Shown here in pieces: positions 10,551 to 13,313 of a stretch of DNA of 64,000 nt. The notes under the pieces were generated by a model, which ran no database searches, was not told the DNA's origin, and was given only the letters and a program-made list of their open reading frames with translations. The translations under genes and the position numbers were made by a program. The stretch is taken from sequence record MT133560.1. One strand, given 5' to 3'. Positions within the stretch are counted from its first letter, which is position 1. Every line of letters starts with the position of its first letter.

Positions 10551-10694
10551 ATGCAAGTACGAATTGAGGTAATCAATAGTGAGGGTAATCTGGATATCGA
10601 AGAACGGGTTGATATCCACCCAATAAAAGGGTTAACGGCCTGGATGGTCGTTCTAGCTATCAAAGGTCTTGTAGCTAGCTTTGCACGTAAGTAA
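10551..10694 (+). CDS. 47-aa protein with C-terminal hydrophobic helix (MQVRIEVINSEGNLDIEERVDIHPIKGLTAWMVVLAIKGLVASFARK)
   Basis: AAGGAG SD; below the ORF-track cutoff; followed by a terminator. Confidence 0.65.
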   Translation: MQVRIEVINSEGNLDIEERVDIHPIKGLTAWMVVLAIKGLVASFARK

Positions 10695-10705
10695 GACGAC
10701 ATAAA

Positions 10706-10746
10706 CCCCTCTCCATGTGGAGAGGGGCCTGTCTTTATTTTTTTTT
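10706..10746. terminator. Terminator between convergent genes
   Basis: CCCCTCTCC-ATGT-GGAGAGGGG followed by a T tract. Confidence 0.85.
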
Positions 10747-11242
10747 ATTTAGTTAACGGCTTGTTTAATTCATTTAACTGGTTATTGTTATTAACAGCCT
10801 CATTATGAGTAATATTCCTACATAATTCAATTATGTATTCTACCTCAGAATAAGCTAATTCAAAGAATTCAGTTAATGACATATTAGATAAGCTACCTAC
10901 TTTATACTTGAAGAAATCTCTAGTCAGTCTCCTTCTCAACCCACCTTCGATAAAATCCTCTTTAGGATTTACTTTATTTAACCACATGGGTCCGTTTTCT
11001 GGTGAACCGATATCGTAATCAAGTAGATATGCTTCTCTTGTTAAACGTGCTGCTGTAGACGGTCTTACTGCCCCTACTGTCGATAATAGTCTATCTAAGT
11101 GTGTATCATCTTCAGTTAACTTATCATAACCAAAGTTTGGATGTAGGATGTGGCCACTATCTTCCGTGAAAGTGGCCTCAAGACGACTATATCTCAGATC
11201 ATTAACTACACCATCCGGTTTGACTTCGAGGCCGCCAAAGTA
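10745..11242 (-). CDS. T4 gp51-like / 'T' frame of a tail-assembly chaperone, probably reached by -1 frameshift from the upstream gene (gp76-like)
   Basis: Frame is open from 11260 to the stop at 10745 with no ATG/GTG/TTG for about 90 codons before the ATG at 10987; SLTEFFELAYSEVEYIIEL resembles gp51/T-type segments. Confidence 0.65.
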   Translation of the reverse strand, partial: YFGGLEVKPDGVVNDLRYSRLEATFTEDSGHILHPNFGYDKLTEDDTHLDRLLSTVGAVRPSTAARLTREAYLLDYDIGSPENGPMWLNKVNPKEDFIEGGLRRRLTRDFFKYKVGSLSNMSLTEFFELAYSEVEYIIELCRNITHNEAVNNNNQLNELNKPLTK

Positions 11243-12807
11243 AAAAAAGTTGACAGCATGTCAATAGGGATTAAGTGTGGGAAACGTTCTTTAAATTTAG
11301 TAGCAGCAGGTGACTCACATACTGGACAATTCCAACTTGTAATTGCAATCATTCCAATTAGTTGTGAATCAATGAAGTTACTCACCGCATTAATAAAGCG
11401 GTCATTATATTCCGGTGTGGATAGAATATTAGTTAAGAACTTTTCAATAGTTTCACGATTAGTGGTTGCAGTACGAATATTGTCTTCAGAACTTTCACCA
11501 TCGTCATCTTCACGTACTTTAATTTCTTTAACAAAATGTGAGAACTGACGGGCAATAGAGATCTTTTGTAAACGTGCAATATACTGAGAACGTTGCGGAC
11601 CATCGACTGGTTCATTAAAACTACCTTGAGTCATATCGATAATTGAGTTAATCCAACTATCACCAGACTCTCGGCGATCAGCAATTGTACACATCTCAAG
11701 AACAACACCAACGTCACCAAACATTTCAGTTACTTGAGTTTCAATACGGAATCCTTCTTTATAAGTCTTAAGATCAGATTCAGTACATGCATTAAACTTA
11801 CGTGCAATATATTTCTTTTGTTCTTCTGAGAATGCCAGTAGATCATATTGAACAAGCGTTGACATATTAAGTTTCGCTGTTTCAATATGGTTACATGTAT
11901 TGGCATCTGCAATGCATGGATAACTATAATTAAATCCATCTGGATACATAGTCGCCGCTAGTGCGTGATGCAAGAACGGCTCATCAGCTACTGAGATAAC
12001 ATGCTCTAGATCAGTTGGGGTGTTGAACTTATAGTTGGATTGAATAACACATGCAAGTGCTAAACTACTAACCATGTTAAGTAACACAGCTGCCATGTTT
12101 GAGAACAGCATACCTTTTGATTCAGCGCCTAGCCGGATCTTTAATTGTGCTAGACGTGCTTGTAGGGCAGCTACTTCAGTACCAGTAGGTGCACGTAGTT
12201 TTACCCAAATACCTGAATGAGGTAGGAAAGTATCATATGGCGTACCGATGTTAGCTTTACGTGTTAGGAAAACTAGAGTTTCATCATCGGTCATTTTACG
12301 ACCATTGGTATTAAATACAGGTCGGCCTGGTCGAATGATCTTTTCACCATAAGGAATTTCACTAGACCATTCAGAACCTTCTCGGGCAGTTGCACCGATT
12401 GGTGCATCTTCAACAATAGAGTGAGCTAAGCCTTCCAGAATAGCAGCTGTCCACTTTACACCGTCACTAGTGTCATCTACTTTATTATCAGCAAATGCTT
12501 TAAATAGTTCTTTATTGTGATCCAGGAAATTATAAACAGTCTGGGGATTCTCACGTAGTAAAGTAAGAATGCTAGCACTATCTTTAATAGCCGGTTCAGA
12601 AGCATCCCGGATATTTCCAGTTTTAGCATTACGTGGAATACGTAGTTTAATTTCTTTTTGATCAGGAACGAAAGGTGGAGTTTCCACCTCGTCATTATTT
12701 TCAATACTAGAGTCAGGATCGTGTTGCGCATTGATCTCATCAATTTGATCTAGTAAATTCTCTTCTGGAGTATCATCGTACTCATTATCGAAGTCAGCAG
12801 TAGCCAT
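11206..12807 (-). CDS. gp77-like; putative T4 gp26-like tail/baseplate assembly chaperone
   Basis: 533 aa; VKLRAPT, Cys pairs YPC..TCNH and WNCPVC, and a terminal 'STFF', all reminiscent of gp26; family assignment is inference. Confidence 0.6.
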   Translation of the reverse strand: MATADFDNEYDDTPEENLLDQIDEINAQHDPDSSIENNDEVETPPFVPDQKEIKLRIPRNAKTGNIRDASEPAIKDSASILTLLRENPQTVYNFLDHNKELFKAFADNKVDDTSDGVKWTAAILEGLAHSIVEDAPIGATAREGSEWSSEIPYGEKIIRPGRPVFNTNGRKMTDDETLVFLTRKANIGTPYDTFLPHSGIWVKLRAPTGTEVAALQARLAQLKIRLGAESKGMLFSNMAAVLLNMVSSLALACVIQSNYKFNTPTDLEHVISVADEPFLHHALAATMYPDGFNYSYPCIADANTCNHIETAKLNMSTLVQYDLLAFSEEQKKYIARKFNACTESDLKTYKEGFRIETQVTEMFGDVGVVLEMCTIADRRESGDSWINSIIDMTQGSFNEPVDGPQRSQYIARLQKISIARQFSHFVKEIKVREDDDGESSEDNIRTATTNRETIEKFLTNILSTPEYNDRFINAVSNFIDSQLIGMIAITSWNCPVCESPAATKFKERFPHLIPIDMLSTFFTLAASKSNRMV

Positions 12808-12818
12808 TTAAAACTCCA

Positions 12819-13313
12819 TTATTGTTGAATTAGTTTTTCGTCCCAACCAGCTTCTCGAAGAGTGCCGATCATCGCTAGGATTACACCATCAATACCGCGT
12901 TCAATAGCACCTTCAATACCAGTGTATTTAGTAACAAGTTCACTGATGAGTTTTAGTTCATCTTCATTATTTGCTGGACCAGCCTTACCTTGATGTTGTG
13001 CATATAGGACACTGATAATTTTAGTTAGTCGATTAAGGTCAGCAATAACTGTTTGTAGGTTCTTTTGGAATCCAGTAGGATCAGATAACGTCGGAATGAT
13101 TTCATTGATCTTATTGATAACTGGATTAATGAATACTTCAGTTTGTAGAATACGTTTACCTACGGAACCTGCTAGTACATTGACAACATCCCAACCATCG
13201 CGGTTAAGAATATGATCAGCTGCGGCAGCTGATGCTCCAACTGCACGTTCAAATAGACGTAGCGTCTTTTCCTGTTCTTTAGTTAGAGTTGGTTCTTTAG
13301 CTTTATTTGACAT
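12819..13313 (-). CDS. Hypothetical protein (gp78-like)
   Basis: 164-aa ORF, GGAG SD. Confidence 0.8.
   Translation of the reverse strand: MSNKAKEPTLTKEQEKTLRLFERAVGASAAAADHILNRDGWDVVNVLAGSVGKRILQTEVFINPVINKINEIIPTLSDPTGFQKNLQTVIADLNRLTKIISVLYAQHQGKAGPANNEDELKLISELVTKYTGIEGAIERGIDGVILAMIGTLREAGWDEKLIQQ

Follow-up and report, generated by a model that had tools for sequence, protein, structure and literature searches.

Gene 77 of phiKZ-type phages probably yields two proteins, the second by way of a programmed −1 ribosomal frameshift, a reading to which we give a probability of about three in four. We propose that most ribosomes would read through the heptamer U_UUU_UUU at positions 11248-11242 and stop 11 codons later, yielding the 533-aa gp77. 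A minority would slip back by one base, with both Phe-tRNAs on the run, and continue for 165 codons in the −1 frame. The resulting product of about 687 aa would have its first 522 residues in common with gp77, followed by 85 unannotated codons and PHIKZ076.4. By far the best reading of the locus is the one put forward in an earlier note on this DNA, a −1 frameshift on the U-run by which gp77 gains about 165 residues, and it is conserved well beyond phiKZ. None of the 19 phage records inspected carries an annotation of the signal. A search of the available literature revealed no earlier mention of this frameshift or of the function of phiKZ gp77, and no proteomic or ribosome-profiling statement on a transframe product; the matches to “gp77” found there are genes of other phages.

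The locus lies in a window of 64,000 nucleotides (record MT133560.1) from Pseudomonas phage fnug, a phiKZ strain, and is organized as follows.

12819..13313, minus strand: gp78 homologue (164 aa) from the ORF list, first gene of a conserved three-ORF module.
11206..12807, minus strand: gp77 zero-frame ORF (533 aa), with the stop TAG at 11208-11206.
11242..11248, minus strand: putative slippery heptamer T_TTT_TTT (mRNA U_UUU_UUU), made up of the last base of the Thr520 codon and the codons of Phe521 and Phe522.
10745..11242, minus strand: predicted −1 frame extension of 165 sense codons plus TAA, the last 80 codons of which (10987..10745) are annotated as PHIKZ076.4.
11206..11241, minus strand: predicted dual-coding overlap, read in frame 0 as the last 11 gp77 codons and the stop, and in frame −1 as the first 12 extension codons.
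10706..10727, both strands: terminator-like G+C-rich hairpin between convergent genes, with a 9-pair stem on the plus strand and 6 pairs on the minus strand.

In frame 0, positions 11250-11239 of the minus strand read ACT TTT TTT ACT, which places a canonical X_XXY_YYZ heptamer in phase, and the run of seven T residues described in the earlier note is indeed present near the end of gene 77. The −1 frame is opened by the TGA at 11263-11261, four codons ahead of the U-run, and stays open from 11260 to the TAA at 10747-10745 for 171 sense codons. Within it, the earliest ATG, GTG or TTG comes 91 codons in, at 10987 (ATG). These coordinates agree with those given earlier, as does the arithmetic of the predicted transframe product (522 + 165 = 687 aa), compared to 533 aa for the frame-0 product. 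Judged by sequence, the architecture is thus a short frame-0 product and a longer −1 product with a common N-terminus. The hairpin at 10706..10727 closes the unit of gp78, gp77 and the extension, and no terminator-like site is reported between the gp77 stop and 10745.

Profile searches placed gp77 in phrog_4585 (E 7e-196) and the gp78 homologue in phrog_14050 (E 9e-75), whereas the match of the extension to phrog_12109 begins only at residue 33 of the open frame. Public data contain no fewer than 1,684 sequence clusters of the gp77 family, and in each relative with an annotation a small gene lies directly 5' of the gp77 homologue. The surroundings of gp77 hold gp78, gp79, the vRNAP gene gp80, the DNA polymerase gene gp82, the helicase gene gp75 and the nvRNAP genes gp73/74, and relatives have a similar kind of neighbourhood. 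The site is far from the tail genes, as had been pointed out, its neighbours being a helicase, RNA polymerase subunits and a DNA polymerase. gp77 is the Chimalliviridae core gene cg18, entered as a hypothetical protein (Table S3, PMC10299810). In the phiKZ and 201phi2-1 records, virion-protein flags are carried by the neighbours gp79-81 and gp138, and not by gp77 and gp136.

The comparison set consisted of 39 loci from more than 20 lineages, with gp77 identity down to about 16-20%. Its sources include phages of Pseudomonas, Salmonella, Serratia, Ralstonia, Erwinia, Xanthomonas, Klebsiella, Vibrio, Aeromonas and Bacillus, Halocynthia-associated phages and IMG/VR contigs. In all 39 loci the downstream ORF occupies the −1 frame (null probability 1e-10 over 21 clades), and in all 39 it overlaps an N_UUU_UUN run (T5-T9) at the homologous Phe-Phe position. 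The distance from the run to the −1 stop is uniform, at 152-182 codons in the 38 loci whose contig reaches the stop. All 34 loci compared have TTT as the first Phe codon of the pair (P about 1e-11 over 21 clades), whereas elsewhere in these genes TTT accounts for 0-77% of the Phe codons, with 0/14 in Xoo-sp14. Moreover, the first Phe codon is preceded by T in 17 of the 21 clades against 32% expected (P = 6e-6), so that the canonical U_UUU_UUN is found in 17/21 clades and N_UUU_UUY in the remaining ones. A non-T first base (A_ or G_UUU_UUY) occurs in four Pseudomonas lineages, and PA1C has only T5; both forms are weaker classical slip sites. The Phe-Phe dipeptide falls within the predicted C-terminal helix of gp77 in the AF2 model, and part of its conservation could therefore be structural.

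The −1 frame is conserved as protein well ahead of any start codon. With tblastn, the 171-aa frame aligned from residue 1-6 in 21 distant phages (E 1e-18 to 2e-26), and the 72 codons that follow the gp77 stop and precede the ATG at 10987, taken alone, matched the −1 frames of relatives with E from 1e-13 to 3e-6. The protein-level conservation upstream of 10987 on which the earlier claim depended is thus found, and the start-less stretch is, on these comparisons, protein-coding. In addition, the PHROG families of the downstream ORF have matches in all distant lineages. Within the overlap, identities over 16 pairs of relatives were 137/238 in frame 0 and 125/215 in frame −1; as both frames are about 58% identical, conservation of the overlap alone cannot tell which frame is read.

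The alternative that no recoding takes place, and that the downstream ORF is a separate gene started from its annotated ATG (80 aa in phiKZ), from an unusual start or by re-initiation after the gp77 stop, fits the GenBank records, every one of which, among those inspected, carries two separate CDS. A TTG overlaps the gp77 stop in 201phi2-1, and in Psa21 an ATG lies 8 codons past it, as this alternative would expect. However, the first start codon after the run lies anywhere from 10 to 104 codons downstream, at non-homologous places and inside conserved protein sequence, which such starts would cut. In phiKZ, the AgentSmith group, LAh10, Ea35-70 and the loci L033 and L026, 62-104 codons of this conserved stretch contain no ATG, GTG or TTG at all. 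The phiKZ ATG at 10987 has no Shine-Dalgarno sequence ahead of it, whereas gp77 and gp78 each carry a GGAG, 6 nt and 10 nt ahead of their ATGs, respectively. A separate gene would also leave the invariant −1 phase, the invariant U-run and the TTT codon bias unexplained, and we regard it as quite improbable.

Homopolymers are the commonest site of sequencing errors and the finding rests on one window, so that a miscounted run in the assembly, or a gene broken in this strain, has to be considered. Against this, gp77 is full length in 13/13 records of at least 99% identity among the matches listed (47 matched), and the −1 ORF in 41/41 such records among those listed (46 matched). These phiKZ-type records keep the same frames, and all distant lineages examined, from several sequencing eras, keep the same arrangement, which together exclude a sequencing slip in one genome. 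Furthermore, a single-frame fusion of gp77 and the extension was found in none of the best 150 of the 1,684 family representatives, each of which ends within about 26 residues after the gp77-profile match, nor among the matches of a homologous-protein search. An artefact or gene decay is accordingly extremely improbable. Near the C-terminus, 151/151 proteins (P0001, P0002 and 149 representatives) keep a Phe-Phe or Phe-Leu pair, and the last such pair is followed by a median of 13 residues. The lack of a fused form among the best 150, together with the retained C-terminal pair, indicates that neither the stop nor the shift has been lost.

A slip at the run could also take place during transcription, if stuttering of the RNA polymerase of phage or host on the T-run gave a fraction of the mRNAs a changed number of U residues; both frames would then be continuous in the altered mRNAs, and ribosomes would not shift. 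Most lineages have T7-T8 and the metagenomic lineage L053 has T9, and T7-T9 are the lengths at which polymerases stutter, as in Thermus dnaX, IS elements and Ebola GP. The lack of RNA structure alongside the run also fits this explanation, as does the use by phiKZ of its own unusual polymerases, encoded next door. By contrast, the run is just T6 in many lineages and just T5 in PA1C, lengths at which known polymerases would not stutter appreciably, and these short-run lineages keep the ribosome-type N_UUU_UUY pattern. The enrichment of T at the X position is expected under both models and does not decide between them. Altogether, we infer slippage by the ribosome and not by the polymerase, and stuttering as the general cause is unlikely, although both kinds of slippage may contribute in the T8-T9 lineages.

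Stimulatory elements of −1 frameshifts, either a hairpin or pseudoknot 5-9 nt downstream or an upstream Shine-Dalgarno sequence, are common but not obligatory. The earlier note had proposed two competing stems past the slip site of gene 77.

11152..11233, minus strand: the two proposed competing stems, stem 1 pairing 11233-11224 with 11182-11174 and hairpin 2 spanning 11177-11152.

Both complementary stretches of stem 1 are present, 8 nt past the slip site, and the stem has −10.9 kcal/mol on its own. Its ensemble probability is, however, about 1.6% and it is not conserved, so that a stimulatory role for it is not supported. Hairpin 2 has an ensemble probability of about 98% and begins 64 nt past the run, and nothing indicates that it stimulates slippage either. 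The 90 nt past the run fold no better than shuffled sequences in the window (z = −0.85), and over the 22 lineages folded z is mostly between −1 and +1. Among 14 sequences of the Pseudomonas clade, RNAalifold gave no conserved stem (−1.28 kcal/mol, 4 pairs only), an Rfam search of the site returned no match, and a non-systematic look upstream of the run showed no Shine-Dalgarno-like motif. What is conserved at the site is thus the U-run, in 39/39 loci, and not the stem. With no conserved hairpin or pseudoknot downstream, the efficiency of slippage may be low; as in lambda G/GT, where no stimulator is seen either, the slip appears to be inefficient.

The −1 frameshift of the lambda G/GT tail assembly chaperones was described by Levin, Hendrix and Casjens (1993) and Xu, Hendrix and Duda (2004), as cited in PMC8570332 and PMC9024508. 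Like lambda G/GT, gene 77 has a heptamer for a putative −1 slip close to where the upstream ORF ends, a shorter frame-0 product and a longer transframe product with a common N-terminus, and conservation over a large group of phages; if the fold match described below is right, both are also non-virion morphogenetic factors. The lambda frameshift is not known to need an RNA stimulator, and no strong one was seen for gene 77. The differences are equally clear. Lambda G has about 140 aa and the slip site G_GGA_AAG, whereas gp77 has 533 aa and a U-run. Unlike the lambda pair, gene 77 is not flanked by the tube and tape-measure genes, and no Pfam, PHROG or PDB link connects the two families. Membership of gp77 in the lambda G/GT tail-assembly-chaperone family was therefore rejected on position, size and sequence, and the earlier view of the locus as the phiKZ-family equivalent is not supported in that sense. 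Gene 77 is probably expressed in the same way as lambda G/GT, as its sequence suggests, though it is not a member of the family.

A parallel at the slip site itself is the P2 tail gene E/E+E', which reportedly uses a −1 frameshift on a U-run of the T6G type (Christie et al. 2002). Both genes have a −1 frameshift on a U-run, established for P2 and predicted for gene 77, and that of P2 is a myovirus morphogenesis gene. The P2 products, however, belong to the small chaperones of the G/GT class, their gene adjoins the tape-measure gene, and no sequence relation of gp77 to them was detected. Bacterial −1 frameshifts on X_XXY_YYZ, such as those of E. coli dnaX (tau/gamma) and of the IS3-family orfA/orfAB, set a fixed ratio of two proteins, with orfAB as the longer transframe product. 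Their sites combine A_AAA_AAG with an upstream Shine-Dalgarno sequence and/or a downstream hairpin or pseudoknot, whereas the gene 77 site has a U-based run and no detectable stimulator.

The earlier note had also seen in the two frames a pair like T4 gp26/gp51, a likeness that may stand for gp77, at the level of fold only. A Foldseek search with the AF2 model of gp77 (pTM 0.80) against the BFVD predicted structures revealed five matches named baseplate hub assembly protein or chaperone, with E from 1.5e-4 to 2.5e-3, a probability of 1.00, a target-normalised TM of 0.52-0.59 and an RMSD of 6.7-10.8 Å. On this model, gp77 is probably a remote relative, in fold alone, of the T4 gp26/gp51-type hub assembly chaperones. 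Some annotators label gp77 homologues “putative baseplate hub assembly protein”. T4 gp26 and gp51 are hub assembly chaperones (Table 2, PMC3004832). Both match PF12322 (T4_baseplate) with E from 1e-52 to 1e-64, as well as phrog_150, whereas no match to PF12322 was found in gp77 or in 15 diverse homologues. Comparison of the gp77 alignment with T4 gp26/gp51 by hhalign gave probabilities of 0.7%, 19% and 8.6%, none significant, and aligned only CPxC motifs. Sequence and profile searches likewise placed gp77 in no known TAC family. Searches of Pfam, NCBIfam and PDB returned no match for gp77, gp78 or the extension, and the PHROGs that they match are all of unknown function.

The extension has no counterpart detected by hhalign in T4 gp26/gp51 and no detectable relatives outside these phages. 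Single-sequence AF2 prediction gave a pLDDT of 38, which is unusable, and a word-based homologue search with the extension found only one partial homologue, as gene callers shorten this ORF. Since the extension resembles neither gp51 nor anything else, a gp26/gp51 pair is not supported. gp77 is twice as long as T4 gp26 or gp51, and no frameshift is annotated in gene 26 or gene 51 of the T4 record. Nevertheless, T4 also makes more than one such polypeptide, as is proposed for gp77, namely the two paralogues and the internal-start product 26'.

We infer that gp77 acts as a non-virion morphogenetic chaperone, presumably in hub assembly, for which a fixed ratio of the short and long forms matters. 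A more speculative and rather doubtful extension of this proposal is that one frameshifted gene does the work that T4 splits between gp26 and gp51, as an ancient and obligatory feature of jumbo phages. In this scheme, gp77 would be a chaperone of the hub or of another large assembly, the two forms would be made in a fixed ratio, the extension would recruit a second partner, and the bare U-run, which is retained with no RNA stimulator in hosts from Bacillus to Pseudomonas, would serve as a host-independent slip signal. The slip on such a run might further be tuned by the transcription and translation environment of the phage, for example by stuttering of the nvRNAP or by export from the phage nucleus.

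If gene 77 is expressed by a −1 frameshift as we propose, every record inspected mis-annotates the locus, with the small ORF shortened to lineage-specific and probably spurious starts, and a protein of about 687 aa is missing from the records. It would be another −1 frameshift on a bare U-run with no detectable stimulator, and would give phiKZ-like phages, therapeutic and model ones alike, a conserved recoding event. The pair of short and long proteins would then offer a practical way into the function of cg18 in the nucleus-forming phage family, and on how a baseplate hub is built without recognisable chaperone genes of the T4 or lambda type.

The 2.3 kb around the gene 77 site matches Pseudomonas phage fnug at 100% identity and phiKZ at 99%. 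The genes and signals of this region are as follows.

Features around the gene 77 site
13313..12819, minus strand: homologue of PHIKZ078 (gp78)
12807..11206, minus strand: homologue of PHIKZ077 (gp77), 533 aa
11263-11261, minus strand: TGA that opens the -1 frame
11248-11242, minus strand: T7 run; canonical heptamer (X_XXY_YYZ) with gp77 codons ACT TTT TTT ACT
11208-11206, minus strand: gp77 stop TAG, 11 codons past the run
10987..10745, minus strand: homologue of PHIKZ076.4, within the -1 frame
10747-10745, minus strand: TAA that closes the -1 frame
10727-10706: terminator-like hairpin past the -1 stop

The earliest ATG, GTG or TTG of the -1 frame is at 10987, 91 codons in. No Shine-Dalgarno sequence precedes this ATG; GGAG is found 6 nt before the gp77 start and 10 nt before the gp78 start. 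The predicted products are 533 aa and, after a slip, 522 + 165 = 687 aa. The run, the frames, the start-less stretch and the lengths described in the earlier note all proved correct. No terminator-like site was found between the gp77 stop and the hairpin at 10727-10706. In the segment 10706-10747, the TAA of the -1 ORF abuts ten A's followed by a 9-bp G+C-rich hairpin common to the convergent gene, which looks like a bidirectional terminator.

The 171-aa translation of the -1 frame, called from its opening stop, matches PHROG 12109 starting at residue 33. In a tblastn search, 21 distant Pseudomonas phages, including PA1C, phiPA3, 201phi2-1, Psa21, Phabio and Noxifer, align to this translation from residue 1-6, with 34-40% identity (E 1e-18 to 2e-26). 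Moreover, the 72 codons between the gp77 stop and ATG 10987, searched alone, match the -1 frames of relatives at E 1e-13 to 3e-6; their position past that stop and ahead of that ATG rules out any contribution of the gp77 frame to this similarity. The earlier note had made its proposal depend on protein-level conservation of the codons upstream of 10987, and both searches found them conserved. On this evidence the start-less part of the -1 frame is protein-coding sequence.

A comparative survey covered 39 loci from annotated phages, IMG/VR contigs and one Logan contig, with phages of Pseudomonas, Salmonella (SPN3US), Serratia (PCH45), Ralstonia (RSF1), Erwinia (Ea35-70, Wellington), Xanthomonas, Klebsiella, Vibrio, Aeromonas and Bacillus (AgentSmith) in addition to one Halocynthia-associated phage. 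Over these loci the identity of gp77 drops to 16-20%. All 39 have an ORF downstream of the gp77 homologue in the -1 frame, which is open ahead of a T5-T9 run; the run coincides with the homologous Phe-Phe pair (in rare cases Phe-Leu), confirming the conservation of the U-run among relatives. The frame-0 ORF ends 8-44 codons past the run, and the -1 frame spans 152-182 codons from it in the 38 loci whose contig reaches the stop (the contig of L052, an IMG/VR relative of AgentSmith, ends earlier). The earliest -1 start codon lies 10 to 104 codons past the run, at non-homologous places and often within conserved sequence. The downstream ORFs are mutually homologous (PHROGs 12109, 7580 and 13274), and every phiKZ-type record among the matches listed has the same two frames, which excludes an assembly error. 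As judged from sequence, the locus shows the pattern that textbooks describe for programmed -1 recoding.

The extension is in the -1 phase in 21 of 21 clades, for which a null of one in three gives a probability of 1e-10. In 34/34 loci TTT is the codon of the first Phe (P about 1e-11 over 21 clades, with pseudocounts); other Phe codons of the same genes are TTT in 0-77% of cases, including 0/14 in Xoo-sp14 and 2/21 in phiPA3. The base preceding it, X of the heptamer, is T in 17/21 clades versus 32% expected (P = 6e-6). A full HMMER scan of 1.84 billion representatives yielded a gp77 family of 1,684 clusters. Each of the best 150 of these 1,684 ends at most about 26 residues past the end of the gp77-profile match, and a long C-terminal extension is absent from all of these 150. 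A Phe-Phe or Phe-Leu pair is present near the C-terminus of all 151 proteins analyzed (149 of the best 150 representatives, plus the proteins P0001 and P0002), with a median of 13 residues past the last pair. The uniform ends without a fused form, together with the retained Phe pair, show that stop and shift alike are maintained, as would be predicted if two products were needed.

We favor ribosomal slippage at the run, with a probability of roughly three in four, because many lineages possess only T6 and PA1C only T5, yet N_UUU_UUY is kept in phase. Known polymerases would not be expected to stutter on runs of T5-T6. Transcriptional slippage, namely stuttering of the polymerase on the T-run, is a rather improbable origin of both products but a serious rival, above all in the T8-T9 lineages and in view of the unusual polymerases of the phage itself. 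T8-T9 runs, the longest seen, occur in the IMG/VR relatives of AgentSmith L053 (2612-2620), L049, L050 and L052, and in L049 and L050 the first -1 start codon is 103-104 codons past the run, the longest start-less stretches seen. These four lineages are the best place for a search for transcriptional slippage.

As to the RNA downstream of the run, the complementarity of the stimulatory stem proposed in the earlier note is real, but the stem has an ensemble probability of about 1.6% and is outcompeted by a hairpin at 11177-11152, 64 nt from the slip site. In 22 lineages the downstream sequence showed no more folding than its shuffled versions, the consensus fold of the Pseudomonas clade has only four pairs and -1.28 kcal/mol, and an Rfam scan of the region gave no match. 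In the overlap, relatives share about 58% identity in either frame, and this dual coding accounts for the strong nucleotide conservation directly past the run. On these results, ribosomal slippage would probably be unstimulated and inefficient, in which we infer a likeness to lambda G/GT. Gene 77 would share this mode of expression with the lambda G/GT chaperones but differs from them in position, size and sequence, which define that family, so that the proposed G/GT type applies to expression only. Its neighbors, the helicase gp75, the non-virion RNA polymerase subunits gp73/74, gp79, the virion RNA polymerase gp80 and the DNA polymerase gp82, are not a tail module, in agreement with the proposed distance from tail genes.

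The protein gp77 corresponds to the Chimalliviridae core gene cg18, which is listed as a hypothetical protein (PMC10299810, Table S3), and had no match in Pfam, NCBIfam and PDB sequence searches. Its AlphaFold2 model, built from 20 homologues, is confident (pTM 0.80). Comparison with solved structures gave no match (best E = 2.1); among predicted viral structures, jumbo-phage homologues came first, followed by five proteins named "Baseplate hub assembly protein, T4-like" or "hub assembly chaperone" (E 1.5e-4 to 2.5e-3, target-normalised TM 0.52-0.59). The two hub assembly chaperones of T4, gp26 and gp51 (PMC3004832, Table 2), both belong to PF12322 and phrog_150, the family of these fold matches. 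As the link is undetectable by sequence-level comparison, the model makes "gp26/gp51-like" a reasonable but unproven description of gp77 at the fold level. The proposed gp26/gp51-like pair thus holds for gp77 in fold alone, and the extension had no relatives outside these phages and yielded no usable structure model.

Four cysteines of gp77, nearly invariant in 16 very diverse homologues, form C-x6-C and C-P-x-C motifs on the minus strand (Cys298, 11914-11916; Cys305, 11893-11895; Cys494, 11326-11328; Cys497, 11317-11319), pointing to a structural zinc site. An invariant C-x2-C is common to T4 gp26 and gp51, and hhalign aligned the C-P-x-C motifs of gp77 and T4 without significance. In T4 (genes 26, 26' and 51; L045 15803-17229), a single Pfam/PHROG family includes gp26 and gp51 as paralogues, and the annotation gives gene 26 another product from an internal start; T4, too, thus has several related polypeptides of this type of chaperone, though by a different route. 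In Bacillus phage AgentSmith and Erwinia phage pEa_SNUABM_43, the gp77 homologue carries the label "putative baseplate hub assembly protein". In Churi, a 47-aa PHIKZ076.3 homologue on the opposite strand (L002 3707-3850, corresponding to window 10551-10694, plus strand) is labelled "baseplate hub protein"; PHROGs gave only a family without assigned function, and the label is probably mislaid.

Every annotated relative has a small gene (113-231 aa) at the gp78 position immediately upstream of the gp77 homologue, and hence, by position, the conserved unit comprises three ORFs. The gp78 gene (12819-13313, minus strand) matches phrog_14050, and its counterpart in one record is named metallophosphoesterase. 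In the Enterobacteria phages SPN3US (L034 3410-4575) and Wellington (L044 3183-4152), the genes for a gp79-like protein and the beta subunit of the virion RNA polymerase lie downstream of the module on the same strand, whereas phiKZ has them upstream and on the other strand, indicating that the block cg18-cg19-cg20 was kept together but inverted. A 96-aa "hypothetical protein, partial [Klebsiella pneumoniae]" (P0170), on a 288-nt contig, shares 89% identity with the phiKZ -1 ORF; its most likely source is phage DNA that entered a bacterial assembly, not a Klebsiella gene.

The two ORFs are joined in the annotation tables of 0/19 phage records, and the literature searched holds no mention of a frameshift here or of a function for phiKZ gp77. 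Altogether, the site is very probably a new instance of a classical mechanism, with recoding conserved in a gene that belongs to the core set of an entire phage family.
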